64,000 nt of DNA from assembly GCA_023213395.1 (NCBI GenBank), contig CM041465.1, forward strand, positions 192,517,741 to 192,581,740. Reading direction: 5' to 3'. A program made the position numbers and the translations under genes. The notes beneath the pieces were generated by a model, which was not told where the DNA came from, searched no databases, and was given only the letters and a program-made list of their open reading frames with translations. This stretch comes from Cycas panzhihuaensis. Lineage: Eukaryota; Plantae; Cycadophyta. This document shows, one piece after another, positions 9,061 through 15,299 of the stretch. Numbering within the stretch: the stretch's first letter is position 1; each line of letters starts with the position of its first letter.

Positions 9061-10582
9061 ACATATTTACTTGTTGGTGATTTAATAACTTTCTAAGTAT
9101 TATTCTACTTCATAGTAGAGATTGCAACATCTGTTGTTGTTCTCCACTTTTACTCTTAGAAAGTCTTCTCAAAACTCAAAGTCTCATCAACATTAAGTAC
9201 ATCTACCATCAAGTAAAATTAACCATATTAGGTATCATCCTCAATTTTATTTCCCTTTGGTCTTGGGTAACTAAGCTTCTATTACTATTTTTAAGTACTA
9301 CTTAGGGAGTTTCTTGGCAATTGAAGTAACCTTATATTGTATTTTATTATATGATTCCTAAGTATCTTAATATTCCTCCTCCTCATCTTCCATTTCAACT
9401 TTAGCTAATATATTAGCTAGCTTCACTTAGTATTTGGATCAATAAATTATTGCCTCAAAGAATTAAACTTTAGTTGTTTCTTAATCTATTTCCTTTTGTA
9501 TTACTATATCTTTAAAGTGTGTAGGTCAAGATCTCACTTGTTAACTTCTTAAAATATGACATCCCAAGTTGTGTATACCTTTCTAGTTACCAACTCAAAT
9601 ACCTAACTCATTTTTCTTTCGTTTCCATACTTAATAAGGATATACTTATAACTCTTATCATCATTTTTAAAATATTTTTCCTTTATAACATGTAGATCTA
9701 TAATGCTCCTAAAGATTCTAAGATGGTTCACTATTGCCTTTCTCCTTAGTCAAGATTTTTTTGATATCATATTCTAAAATGCCTTTGTTGAATTCTTATT
9801 AACCGAGATATGTTATTATGCAAATAACTTCAATGTAAAAGAATTCATCATTAGCTTGGCCTTTCCAACCAAAGTTTTATTCATCCTCTCATCAACTATA
9901 TTTTCTGAAGTGTGTTTCCTATTAGCTATTTTTATGTCATGGTCCTTACAAAACTAGATAAAGGTATTAAAGGTGTGTTCTTCCCATTATTCGATCTAAG
10001 GATTTTAAACCTTTGATCATTTTTTCCTCCACTTTCACTTTGATCCCTTAAAAGTATCAAAGGTTTGAGATTTCTTCATTATGAGATAAAACTAAACTCT
10101 CCTTGAAAAATCATCAATGAAGGTTAATAAATATCTTACACCTTTGAGTTATATGGTTGGTATTAGACCACAATATCTAAGTGGGTAGGGTTCAACTTTT
10201 AATTGCTCTCTAATCTTTACATTTTATAACTTCTCCTATATTTCTTTCCTATTATATAAGTTTTACAAATAATTTTCATTGGTTTAAGTTCTAGAAGACC
10301 ATGTACTATATTTAATTTATACATTAGATGAAGACAACAGTAATGCAAATGACCCATTCTTTCATGCCATAATTAAAATTTATAAGATGCATTAATGACT
10401 AATATTTTTGGTTTAAAAATTGCCTAAGAGCTTATAAATTCTATTGTCTCTACCACCTTTTATAATAGCTTTCATATCATGGTTGTTGATAATAACCTTT
10501 CTATCCTTGAAAAGAACACTCATACTACTATCTTTAATCTAGTTGACAAAATCAAAATTTTCTTCAATCTTAGTATATATGT

Positions 10583-10861
10583 TGTTAGGATTAGTAATTT
10601 GACAAGCAAATCAAACCCTAATGGTGAGCAACAAAAAATGAAGTATGCACAGAATAGACACCATGTTGGAGAATTGGCCAAAACTCAATTATGAACAAGT
10701 AAGAGTACATACTTATAGTACAACCTCACCACTAGAGAAAGAACCCCATTGGACTACTTAGAGGTGGCACACATATCAAGGTGGCCCACAACTCTAATAC
10801 AATATACAAAAGATAGAGAGAGTTTACATAAGGCTAATGGAATTGAGTATTACACCCAACA
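10583..10861 (-). repeat. 3' LTR of the cargo element
   Basis: TGTTAGGA...CCCAACA; adjacent ttccccca (10862-10869) reads as a polypurine tract on the minus strand. Confidence 0.95.
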
Positions 10862-10914
10862 TTCCCCCATGTAATAGTCAATTACATAAATGTCGTCACT
10901 TCAATGATAAGTTC

Positions 10915-11445
10915 AAGTCTCCAAAAGGTTCTTTGGATCAAAATCATTTCGCACAAAATAAGAAAGCCATTGAAGTCCATATGAAGTAGAGTCCATCTCT
11001 AGGAATGCATGGGTTATCACCGCAACCGCCACTTGATTGGTAGGAACTCCCTCTGTATCGTGGAGCAATCGAGTCGGCAAGAGTAGCTATATAAGGTCCC
11101 ACCCTTGCTCATATGGGAGTGCAAGGAACATATATATAATAAGCACATGGCACATGGCACATGGCAAGAGTCTCCAAAAAGTCTGTTTGGATCATAAATC
11201 TTTCTTGGATCATAAACATTCTTTGGATCATAAACAACTGCCGCCAAGAATAAAAAGCTACTTTGAAGTCCATATGAAGAGGAGTCCATCTAAGGAATGC
11301 ATGGGTTATCACCGCAACCGCCTTGATTGGGTAGGAACTCCCTTTGTATACGTGGAGCAATCGGGGCAAGAGTAGTCGTATAAGGTCCCACCCTTGCTCA
11401 TATGGGAGTGCAAGCGGAAAATATATATGTATAAAGCACATGGCG
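10915..11445 (-). repeat. Two imperfect ~260-290-bp tandem copies of a decayed Copia RT fragment
   Basis: Repeated block gaagtccatatgaag...ataaggtcccacccttgctcatatgggagtgcaag. Minus-strand translation QGWD...IKAVAVITHAFLRWTPLHMDFKVAF resembles Copia RT QGxDY..FAPV...W.LHQMDVK.AF. Confidence 0.7.
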
Positions 11446-11567
11446 AGACAAAGGTAGCTTACGAAAGTGTGTCCTACATCTTCTCAATAGGACTAGCACT
11501 TCTTGACATCTAATGTCCGGAAATACAATGGCACTATGGCCTCAAACATACCACATGGGCTAACAAG

Positions 11568-11704
11568 ATGCCTCATTGGGCTAATCAACTTGCCACCATG
11601 GGCAAAAATAACCCGACATTTGAAATTTTTACATGATGCCTCATTGGGCTAACAACTTGCCACCATGGGCAAAAATAACCGACATGTGAAATTTTTACAT
11701 GATG
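11568..11704. repeat. ~67-bp tandem duplication
   Basis: atgcctcattgggcta...gaaatttttacatg occurs twice in tandem. Confidence 0.9.
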
Positions 11705-12294
11705 AAAATGATATGTGACTTGTGTAGCACATGTGACTCTCTCTCATAAATGAAGTACAATAAGATCACAATGGGTTCTTCAAGAGCTAAAAGGAAGTCC
11801 ATAGTACATGTCATCCCCCCCAATGGGGGTACATTACATCAAGAAAACCTTGAAAGAACAAGATGTGCACTGAAGAAACCGAGAAAAATGAAGATAAATA
11901 GGAACTTATGACTTTGAACTTAAAATTCTCCATGAAAACTCCAAAATATGTCAAATGACTGTCAAATGAAAACTCTCTACATTACGGATCCAACGCATAG
12001 CGATTTAATCGAATCGGACCTCCCAATCTCAAGATACGATGGAAATGTGATAGGTACTCTTTAAGAATCTTTGAAATGGGACGAAATGAAGATTAGCCCC
12101 TTCATGAGTTGGCACAGTCGCATTAAGTCTCCATATGACCGGGGCTAAGTGATGAGGGGCTAGACGGACTTGAAGAGATTATCCAATATAATTAAATCAA
12201 CATTTTCAAACCAAAAAAAATATAACCCTTTTTTAAAACAATTTCACGTCCGCCAAGAATGTAAAAAATAGCCCAAATACTTTTCATAACCCTA

Positions 12295-12695
12295 TTAGGG
12301 TTTATGCAATCGAATAATCGTCGCCTCCATTGAAGATGAAATCTGCAGATTCGAAGATGGGTTGTCGCCATTACAGGTCGACGATGGAGTAGATGAGGGC
12401 GCCATTATTGCGCAGCGAGCCATTCTGTGCAGGTTCGCCATCGAATGCAAATTGTAGGTCAAAGGTTTCTTAACAGTAGATGCAATATCACCAAGGAAGG
12501 AGTTACGGAGAAATCTCTCGCTCGTTACCCGACACAGTAATAAGGAGCTTTGGAGCTCAGCGCGCGATGCACAATGCCAGAACAAGGGTACCCTGGCATC
12601 GATCGACAATCTCAAACAGGGGTCATCATGCCGAAGGCAGAGGTAAAGGCAGAAGTACTGAGCCGCCATAGAGTGAGAGTACGATGGAGAGGAGC
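12295..12695 (-). pseudogene. Second captured fragment: pyrimidine-rich leader, ATGGCG start and Ser/Arg-rich, transit-peptide-like reading frame
   Basis: ctcctctccatcgtactctcactctATGGCGGCT with ATG at 12669. Reads [12 protein letters not shown] (shifted frame) ...ERFLRNSFLG...MARCAIMAPSS. CpG-rich. Donor gene not recognised. Confidence 0.4.
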
Positions 12696-13034
12696 CTTGG
12701 AGCGATTGCAACAGCTGTTCGAGCTCTTGACAAAGTCAATGGCCCCTCCAATAATTAATGCTTGATCTCCCCTTTGAATGTAGGACCGTTGGCTTTCTAC
12801 TTTTTCGATGTTCTTGCAGGCTTTGGATCGTTTCCTCTTCCTTCGCTCCCGAACGACGTCGGTCCTGGTGCTCAATTGGGAGGCGGGATCAACGTTCATT
12901 GACATCCGAGGCTCAGGCGAAGCTACGAAGCCCCCGCCCATGCAATTCTCCAAAGAATTGACGGTGGAAGAGGAATTAGGCTCGCGGGTTGAATCGACAC
13001 CCTCCTCCACTTGCATCCGGTGGAAAGAGTACAT
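12696..13034 (-). pseudogene. Captured, processed fragment of a bHLH subgroup Ia (FAMA/SMF-like) transcription factor with an internal deletion and a frameshift
   Basis: [19 protein letters not shown]|[20 protein letters not shown], then a 1-nt shift into [10 protein letters not shown]. Matches the Ia consensus KRKR..[57 protein letters not shown] without the MTHIA...MPG segment. Confidence 0.9.
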
Positions 13035-13295
13035 ACTTAGAGGAAAAGATCCAGAAACAAGAAGCAATGGAAGCTCTCATTTCCAAGTTTTGTCACTATT
13101 TCTTCTCTCGAAAGCCGCTTATATGACTTCAAGCAACCCACACGTACAATCTCCCTCGTGAGATTATACAACAGACAGTTGAGTCCCAAACTCCTACAGA
13201 CACAACCTCTGCTCCAGAGCTTTAGTGAAAGTAAAAAGTTGAAGACATGACAAAGCTTGGGAAGCTTTCTAACAAGCGAGCCCAACACATAGCGC

Positions 13296-13500
13296 TTTTT
13301 CTTTCTTTCTTTTTTTTTTTTTTTTTTTTTTTTGAAATACATAAGAATATAGGCCAGATTTGAAGGCCTTGAATACAAAATTTTTGAGCATAAGAGAAAT
13401 ACATATCAAAAAATATATGTATAACTCAGAATATGCAAATACTTTTGAAAATAGAGTTTCTTCTAGCTTCCGGATAGCGAGAAGCACTCACTCAGCTAAT
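13296..13500 (-). other. Captured mRNA 3' UTR ending in a poly(A) tract
   Basis: 24 consecutive T at 13310-13333 (A on the element's sense strand), preceded on the minus strand by U-rich 3'-UTR-like sequence. Confidence 0.55.
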
Positions 13501-13890
13501 TAGCAGTTCTGCAACACTACGTCCTTGACATGCGAAGGAAGCGATCAAGCAGAATTGGATGCACAAAGAATTTGGTGGACTTTCACCTGCATGCAATATT
13601 ATTGTGGTACCACATGTGGAGAAGAGGTCCACCCGGCAAGATTGAGGCTTCAAATGACCACAAAACTTCAAAGCGGCTTGAAAGCGACCTCTCATCATCA
13701 CCAAAATAGCCCTTCAAAATTTGATATCAGTCCCATAACAAAATATGCATCAGATATAACTTGAAATGATCTTCAACTTGACGAAGTCACGAAGCGAACA
13801 CATCAAAAATTTACAAGACTTGAAAGCTCAAAAAACAGAAATGACATGTACTAGGACTTTCAAGAAAGGCCTCCAAGGGTTGAACCTTGG

Positions 13891-13902
13891 GCTCTGATAC
13901 CA
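13891..13902 (-). promoter_or_regulatory. Primer binding site (tRNA-iMet)
   Basis: gctctgatacca is the reverse complement of TGGTATCAGAGC and abuts the 5' LTR. Confidence 0.95.
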
Positions 13903-14181
13903 TGTTAGGATTAGTAATTTGACAAGCAAATCAAACCCTAATGGTGAGCAACAAAAGATGAAGTATGCACAGAATAGACACCATGTTGGAGAATTGGCCA
14001 AAACTCAATTATGAACAAGTAAGAGTACATACTTATAGTACAACCTCACCACTAGAGAAAGAACCCCATTGGACTACTTAGAGGTGGCACACATATCAAG
14101 GTGGCCCACAACTCTAATACAATATACAAAAGATAGAGAGAGTTTACATAGGGCTAATGGAATTGAGTATTACACCCAACA
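13903..14181 (-). repeat. 5' LTR of the cargo element
   Basis: 277/279 identical to 10583-10861. Confidence 0.95.
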
Positions 14182-15299
14182 TATGTTACCTCCTCGATGT
14201 AGTCATCTTCCTATTAGGTGTGATCAATAAGACCTTATTCCCTCTACTTTCAATACCTTATTATCTCCTAATATTATAATCTACCTATTTGCTTGCTTCC
14301 CACATGTGTCTAAACCATCCAATCTTGAATTCCATGTGTCTAAAATCCCTTAAATTAATGTACTAGATATCATATGCTCTTGGGCATGTTTATGAAGGTA
14401 CCATGAAGATTTTTTATCCCTTGTTAGTTGAGTTAGTTGATTAATTAGAAATGTGCCCTACCTATAATTTCTTCCCTATTTTTCTTGATATCCCTTCTTC
14501 TCTTGATCAACCTATCACTTCTTATAATCTCTCTTGAAATGGCCTAACTTATTACAATAATATCATAGCTTTGGTTACCCCTTTCGAGTAAACTATGCTA
14601 TCATTGAAACTCATTCTTCTTTCAAATGAAAGATTTCTTCCTCTTTGACTATAGTAGAAAAACATTAAAATATTCCTTAATAATTTTATGCTTCAATATT
14701 TGCTCATATTATAATAACAATATCTCTAACTTATTAAATGTGATATTTTTTATTTTCTCTGTAAGAAAAAATTCATCATAGAAATTTTCAACCTCTTTAA
14801 TTAACTCCTTAATACCACAATAATCATACCCTTATCATCCATAATCTTCTTATTATTCTCTAATTTATTTCTAATTCCTTTTACCATTTGGAGATGTTTA
14901 ACCATTTAACCCATCATCCTTTGACTATAAAGTTGATTCTTTAAAATCATAATCCTTGTATCACTTTTTTCTCAAAGATAGGCATGATAGTATCCCATGA
15001 TTCCTTAGGTGTATTCATCTTCTAACATTTTCCACTAGAGCTCCATTGATGGACATGTTTATTAAACCTAAGATGAAGTCACTTTTGCCCTCAAACTTTG
15101 CATTTTCATGAGAAGTGATTATCTTTTCATCTAGTATAGGTACCTTACCTTATAAAATTTACCACAAGCTATTCATGTGGAGTAAATTGGTCATCTAGTG
15201 CTTCTTAGTGCCCTAGCTTTTAGTACTAATTGATTTATTTATCTAGGAGTTAAACACGTTTCCACCTAGTATGTTTATTACCTAGGGGGTAAGCACTTC

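Follow-up and report, generated by a model that had tools for sequence, protein, structure and literature searches.

The capture of host gene fragments by LTR retrotransposons via template switching is well described, and maize Bs1 and the rice chimeric retrogenes are reportedly host gene fragments that were captured in such elements. LTR-mediated retroposition has been treated elsewhere (PMC5131818), and a 2026 survey put the number of coding fragments captured in a gymnosperm genome at ~400,000 and that of cargo-bearing transposable elements (TEs) in a conifer genome at ~480,000 (PMC13477047). TE-captured gene debris of this kind is common and ordinary. The locus described here lies in a window (the whole stretch of DNA that was analysed, 64,000 nucleotides of contig CM041465.1 of Cycas panzhihuaensis) and nothing essential distinguishes it from the captured fragments of these reports (PMC5131818; PMC13477047). 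As in those cases, intact LTRs, a target-site duplication, a primer-binding site and a polypurine tract surround a sense, spliced host-gene fragment. The interior is a mosaic whose sharp breakpoints do not correspond to splice sites, the element itself lacks coding capacity, and what it carries is decaying like a pseudogene. What is specific to the locus is the cargo, with its loss of 27 codons, and the small, high-copy backbone that carries it. The cargo includes a piece of a gene of bHLH subgroup Ia, which comprises SPCH, MUTE and FAMA as well as seven other genes and is recognised by its C-terminal domain and by an 18-aa extension that precedes the bHLH domain (Ran et al., 2013, PMC3823973). 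The sequence is very probably a fragment of a spliced mRNA from one of the 'other Ia' genes, built into a small non-autonomous LTR element and carried in it as low-copy cargo.

The host element is a coding-less LTR retrotransposon of 3.6 kb (10583-14181), oriented as the bHLH reading, i.e., on the minus strand. Its 3′ LTR (10583..10861, minus strand, TG...CA) and 5′ LTR (13903..14181, minus strand) were delimited by repeat search, alignment and blastn (99.28% identity over 279 nt); each is 279 nt long with TG..CA ends, and the two differ at 2 of 279 positions. The remaining landmarks were read from the sequence. The target-site duplication TATGT is found in the left (10578..10582) and in the right flank (14182..14186), a polypurine-tract-like run ATGGGGGAA (10862..10871, minus strand) abuts the 3′ LTR, and a primer-binding site TGGTATCAGAGCC (13889..13902, minus strand), which we take to be of the tRNA-iMet type usual in plant LTR elements, directly follows the 5′ LTR. 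The 3′ backbone (10862..12007, minus strand) is high-copy, as judged from repeat families and a contig depth of 10^3 to 10^4, and holds no gag/pol; the depth profile likewise sets apart a high-copy 5′ backbone, the leader (13348..13888, minus strand). There is no gag/pol-sized ORF in the 3-kb interior (no ORF of 150 aa or more in the 3′ backbone), and no Rfam family was detected in 10400-14400. Within the 3′ backbone, 10929-11444 and 11563-11704 are made of two ~290-nt units (85% identical) and two ~67-nt units (95% identical), and many family variants with indels at these same two places occur in the DNA runs.

Since the LTRs differ at only two positions, the present insertion is called recent, and with an assumed gymnosperm substitution rate it would be of the order of 1-5 million years old. 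In two DNA runs there are contigs in which 10576 is directly followed by 14181, as in an empty site; the flanks there are ~20-copy and 93-97% identical, and these contigs may come from paralogous sites. The flanks themselves (10400-10576 and 14187-14400) are a repeat of ~20 copies, with a summed depth of ~100 against 4-9 per contig, which means that the element inserted into an older repeat.

Between the two backbones lies a low-copy cargo block (12008..13347, minus strand), delimited by contig depth, which is a mosaic of host-derived pieces including the bHLH fragment. Depth was summed over the contigs of three DNA runs of the species and amounts to 10-150 over 12008-13347, against 10^3 to 10^4 over the LTRs, 10862-12007 and 13348-13902. 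Neither a second nor an inverted copy of the cargo was found in the window by repeat search and blastn. An A-rich run (13296..13333, minus strand; 24 A followed by GAAA repeats) marks the passage from the 5′ backbone to the cargo, close to the change in depth at ~13348; an A-run in this place is what would be expected had the tail of a polyadenylated short element transcript been the point of entry for reverse transcriptase. In a probable RNA contig of the species the match is confined to 13039-13087 (49 nt), with unrelated ends of 255 nt on both sides, which suggests that a transcribed gene contributed one more short patch to the cargo.

The sequence fused to the bHLH fragment behind helix 2 carries, on the plus strand and thus opposite to the bHLH reading, a weak formyltransferase-like motif, G.....VD.GVDEGAIIAQ (12299..12454), recognized by Pfam and by a PDB phmmer search. 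The Pfam match to Formyl_trans_N (12299-12454, E = 0.011) is below the curated cut-off; with the 24-residue stretch GLSPLQVDDGVDEGAIIAQRAI the top three PDB matches are all formyltransferases, weak ones (E = 0.64-2), and an Atlas search with the formyltransferase-like piece returned no match. The fused sequence may therefore be an antisense formyltransferase fragment and not the 5′ end of a plastid-targeted gene. Pfam gave nothing above cut-off on ten other cargo ORFs. The features of the cargo fit a patchwork that arose from repeated template changes.

The minus strand at 13013..12697 reads as a bHLH protein of subgroup Ia, in which VESQR is fused directly to SYIQRGDQ, and a tblastn E-value of 7e-20 against P0064 puts this similarity far above chance. 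The fragment (12697..13013, minus strand), defined by tblastn, BLASTP, alignment and tree, holds ~75 residues upstream of the domain, the Ia-specific 18-aa extension, the loop and helix 2, and it lacks the N-terminal ~170 residues as well as anything beyond QSLQ. An exhaustive HMMER search yielded 58 matches, of which Ginkgo Gb_17233 was the first. The fragment lies in a minus-strand ORF of 151 codons in the bacterial-code listing (13067..12612), of which the ATG-started part (12612..13034, minus strand) has 140 codons. This is an accidental reading that passes through the bHLH fragment and whose end is out of frame; the span 12696-13034 given in the initial annotation is bounded by its first in-frame ATG (13034) and by the final codon with homology (12697). 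Pfam HLH was not detected in the copy and the ATG ORF matched no family. Twelve nucleotides upstream of the start of bHLH homology, 15 nt (13025-13039) match the LTRs exactly (10701-10715 and 14021-14035), which may be a scar of a template switch or chance, with an estimated ~0.02 such matches expected per 7-kb self-comparison.

Initially, the copy was described as a stomatal-type (FAMA/SMF-like) bHLH. Its origin in subgroup Ia is confirmed, as the Ia-specific extension matches the homologues column for column. The lineage within the subgroup turned out to be another. In a region-restricted search with the Ginkgo protein, gymnosperm proteins came first (Taxus, the Pinus massoniana bHLH24 cluster, Logan transcripts), angiosperm bHLH57, 67, 70 and 94 ranked after them, and no protein named FAMA, SPCH or MUTE was among the best 120 matches. 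A search seeded with a FAMA-like representative returned FAMA-named proteins, among them Cryptomeria FAMA, a Taxus protein and Ginkgo Gb_32351, hence separate FAMA orthologues exist in gymnosperms for comparison. Over occupied columns the identity of the copy to conifer 'other Ia' proteins amounts to 60-63%, versus 37-41% to gymnosperm FAMA. The latter aligns over the conserved 58-76 residues only (40-44 bits), whereas the 'other Ia' proteins align also over the 75 lineage-specific upstream residues (74-80 bits).

In a maximum likelihood tree of 48 rows, built from a set that left out SPCH, MUTE and moss SMF, the copy falls in a starred group (97/93) with Ginkgo Gb_21105 and the 'other Ia' genes of Pinaceae and of Taxus type; this group is nested in a clade with angiosperm bHLH57/67/70/94 (100/99), and FAMA forms a separate clade (100/99). 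Forcing the copy into seed-plant FAMA costs 66 log-likelihood units (AU test, p = 1.6e-45). The exclusion covers the seed-plant FAMA clade only, since the test did not reject a basal attachment to the FAMA side as a whole, with ferns and lycophytes counted in (p = 0.10). A placement in SPCH/MUTE/FAMA is thus not supported by the tree (97/93 versus 100/99), by the AU test with respect to seed-plant FAMA, or by the identity of 37-41%, so that from the alignment and tree which had been proposed as a check the assignment to subgroup Ia stands and that to the stomatal clade finds no support, the nearest relatives being gymnosperm 'other Ia' genes. By these sequence comparisons the donor is an 'other Ia' gene of the bHLH57/67/70/94 lineage and not a member of SPCH/MUTE/FAMA.

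With this lineage (the Arabidopsis bHLH57/67/70/94 type, Pinus massoniana bHLH24, Ginkgo Gb_21105) the copy shares the motif EEGV..EPNS..NS.ENC, the Ia extension and the helix-2 signature, and it differs from the 'other Ia' proteins in that it lacks 27 domain residues, the N-terminal ~170 residues and the ACT/SMF domain, and is frameshifted. SPCH, MUTE, FAMA and SMF belong to the same subgroup and are alike in the extension and in helix 2, yet FAMA has AIEFV where the copy has AIDFV. Of what defines an Ia member protein, the copy has neither a complete bHLH domain, as 27 of its 52 residues are absent, nor the C-terminal SMF/ACT-like domain; PF22754 was found by Pfam in the homologues and not in the copy.

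The fragment was derived from spliced RNA, as the initial annotation had held in deriving it from a processed mRNA. Ran et al. (2013, PMC3823973) hold no text on intron positions, and the position of the loop intron was taken from two partial ORFs (P0180 and P0178) in the 90% cluster of the closest Pinaceae orthologue. In P0180 the homology extends to LMPGSYIQR and gives way to non-homologous sequence that starts with V, i.e., a GTN codon, which fits a retained GT intron start. P0178 starts with MQ (ATG-CAG) directly before GDQAS, where ..CAG corresponds to an AG intron end; it runs unbroken through the QSLQ-AQKRKR region to THASIK and there departs from the protein. From these two we infer that exon 1 ends at SYIQR and that GDQAS and THASIK delimit exon 2. 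The window has an uninterrupted SYIQRGDQA (12785..12759), with the exon1/exon2 junction SYIQR|GDQAS closed at 12768..12773 (minus strand, from the Pinaceae orthologue fragments). Since the site of the loop intron is closed in the copy, its origin lies in spliced RNA.

A LINE-type processed pseudogene would likewise be copied from a spliced mRNA, an origin that the fragment shows in one closed exon junction. Unlike such a retrocopy, the fragment has no 3′ poly(A), the only A-run (13296-13333) being upstream; the target-site duplication flanks the LTR element and not the fragment; and both ends of the fragment are cut and fused to unrelated sequence between LTRs. The term 'retrocopy' used in the initial annotation thus holds as far as derivation from mRNA is concerned, and does not hold in the sense of a free-standing copy, since the fragment is LTR-element cargo.

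The deletion junction reads CGG|TCC (12783..12788, minus strand) and lies between 12786 and 12785, where 81 nt (27 codons) are absent. BLASTP against Ginkgo Gb_17233 shows a single gap of exactly 27 residues, from VESQR to S[YF]IQRGDQ, and the gap is identical against eight of eight gymnosperm homologues in the alignment. An in-frame loss of the basic region and helix 1, and a distance of about 27 residues between the two motifs in subgroup Ia, had both been put forward in the initial annotation; both are borne out, the distance being exactly 27 in all eight. In P0064 the gap corresponds to residues 247-273 and the Pfam HLH domain to 245-296, so that the loss took nearly the whole basic region together with helix 1 and the initial residue of the loop.

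A frameshift had also been noticed, and it can be traced to the loss of one G at ~12726 (12724..12728, minus strand; AAG-AG for AAG-GAG), which shifts the frame after DFVK: where the homologues have K-ELEQ the copy reads AAG-AGCTC, and the homologous reading resumes in the next frame. Beyond it, a frameshifted continuation of the bHLH gene past QSLQ was considered as a candidate and rejected, as tblastn with C-terminal sequence gave noise only; under lenient settings the C-terminal halves of seven homologues found no C-terminal (ACT/SMF) homology 3′ of QSLQ in any frame of 11900-12720. In one contig in each of two DNA runs, 12726 is joined to 12790, skipping 63 nt; this variant may be a further form of the cargo that lacks the remaining loop and helix-2 codons, or it may hold other sequence there.

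The initial annotation had named a native splice isoform of the donor as what might explain the gap. A retro-copied isoform, produced by exon skipping or by an exitron, would account for a loss of 81 nt that is exactly in frame. However, the loop intron lies after SYIQR, whose codons are kept in the copy. The deletion is located entirely inside exon 1 and ends 15 nt upstream of the exon junction, with which exon skipping fails. Moreover, by the residues of every homologue, the missing segment must begin ATG-ACN (Met-Thr) and end CCN-GGN (Pro-Gly), and edges with these codons provide no GT..AG or AT..AC ends, even if shifted by 1-2 nt, which makes an origin of the gap in splicing very improbable.

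The other breakpoints are no exon edges either. The bHLH homology begins abruptly ~170 residues into the protein and breaks off just as abruptly beyond QSLQ, midway through exon 2; P0178 runs uninterrupted past QSLQ, so that on its 3′ side the homology does not stop at an exon edge. Of the three breakpoints of the fragment (its two ends and the 81-nt loss), set at the protein level against homologues of other species, none coincides with an exon boundary. Template switching is the most likely cause of all three. The spliced 'other Ia' mRNA would have been built into the RNA-derived interior of the element during reverse transcription, where the two ends of the fragment would result from reverse transcriptase switching between co-packaged RNAs, and the 81-nt loss from the enzyme leaving one RNA and re-entering it. 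A one-base loss would later have shifted the frame, and the fragment would since have spread with the element as low-copy cargo.

For the internal deletion taken by itself, a jump of reverse transcriptase has about an even chance of being the cause. A GG microhomology at the deletion, as had been suggested, is putative and would require that the Gly codon of the donor was GGG. A deletion at the DNA level, in which an integrated ancestor already bearing the cargo lost the 81 nt through slippage during replication or through end-joining repair, with the rest of the history unchanged, is a less likely possibility, and its product would be no different. A 1-nt deletion and point changes of the decay type are likewise present in the copy, C>T and G>A predominate in the differences among the copies of the family, and small deletions are common in old TE copies, all of which would fit such an event. 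It is made less likely by the other two breakpoints, which are clearly recombinational, and by the apparent presence of the deletion in copies that are 7-11% apart, which makes it old relative to the spread of the family. Under neither model is there a selective reason in a pseudogene for the loss of exactly 27 codons in frame.

This age is read from related contigs. Those of 89-93% identity extend between 12758 and either 12922 or 13011 and so span the deletion junction, with 26-28 nt on its short side, which is below the 31-nt bridging rule, and contigs of ~85% identity begin at 12435 or 12489 and reach 12787, covering the frameshift as well as the QSLQ fusion. The contigs across the junction and those across the fusion indicate that this architecture is seemingly present in older copies, and hence that the capture predates the young insertion in the window. 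The 81-nt deletion, too, probably predates this insertion.

Since the basic region, helix 1, half of helix 2 and the ACT/SMF domain are all absent, the copy is a pseudogene fragment and no bHLH function is expected. The earlier view that it cannot bind DNA, and that the loss of helix 1 and the frameshift speak against normal dimerisation, agrees with this: judged from the alignment, neither DNA binding nor bHLH dimerisation would be expected of a protein in which the basic region and helix 1 are absent. Could the fragment act in some other way? An ATG ORF with the basic patch RKRKRSK exists, the cargo lies in sense orientation behind the LTR, and donor genes of captured fragments have higher exon methylation in a conifer (PMC13477047). 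A nuclear micro-protein made from the 140-codon ORF might accordingly interfere with Ia/IIIb bHLH partners, or siRNAs from element transcripts might silence the donor. Nevertheless, either function is very unlikely, since besides the lost basic region and helix 1, the frameshifted helix 2 and the absent ACT/SMF domain, depth was zero over 12276-12945, with no RNA contig there, in one probable RNA data set of the species, no inverted copy that could form a hairpin is present in the window, and the protein collection holds no relatives of the 151-aa ORF among proteins of 83-264 aa. The bHLH stretch occurs in none of the runs recorded as RNA, and neither RNA nor siRNA evidence came to light in these data.

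The locus is therefore best described as an ordinary pseudogene fragment, carried by a TE and derived from a non-stomatal Ia bHLH gene. Since its donor is outside the SPCH/MUTE/FAMA lineage, it has no bearing on stomatal development. It is a clean and well-delimited example of gene capture by an LTR element, with every structural landmark in place and three non-splice breakpoints in one short fragment, and as such it is useful as a worked example of template switching by reverse transcriptase, even if by itself it matters little. It also calls for caution in annotation, as automatic gene prediction could list the 140-codon ORF as a truncated bHLH. There is a slim chance that the family is still mobile and that its sense LTR transcripts or 24-nt siRNAs cross-target the parental 'other Ia' bHLH gene; if true, this would be a concrete epigenetic conflict between a TE and its donor over a gymnosperm developmental regulator.
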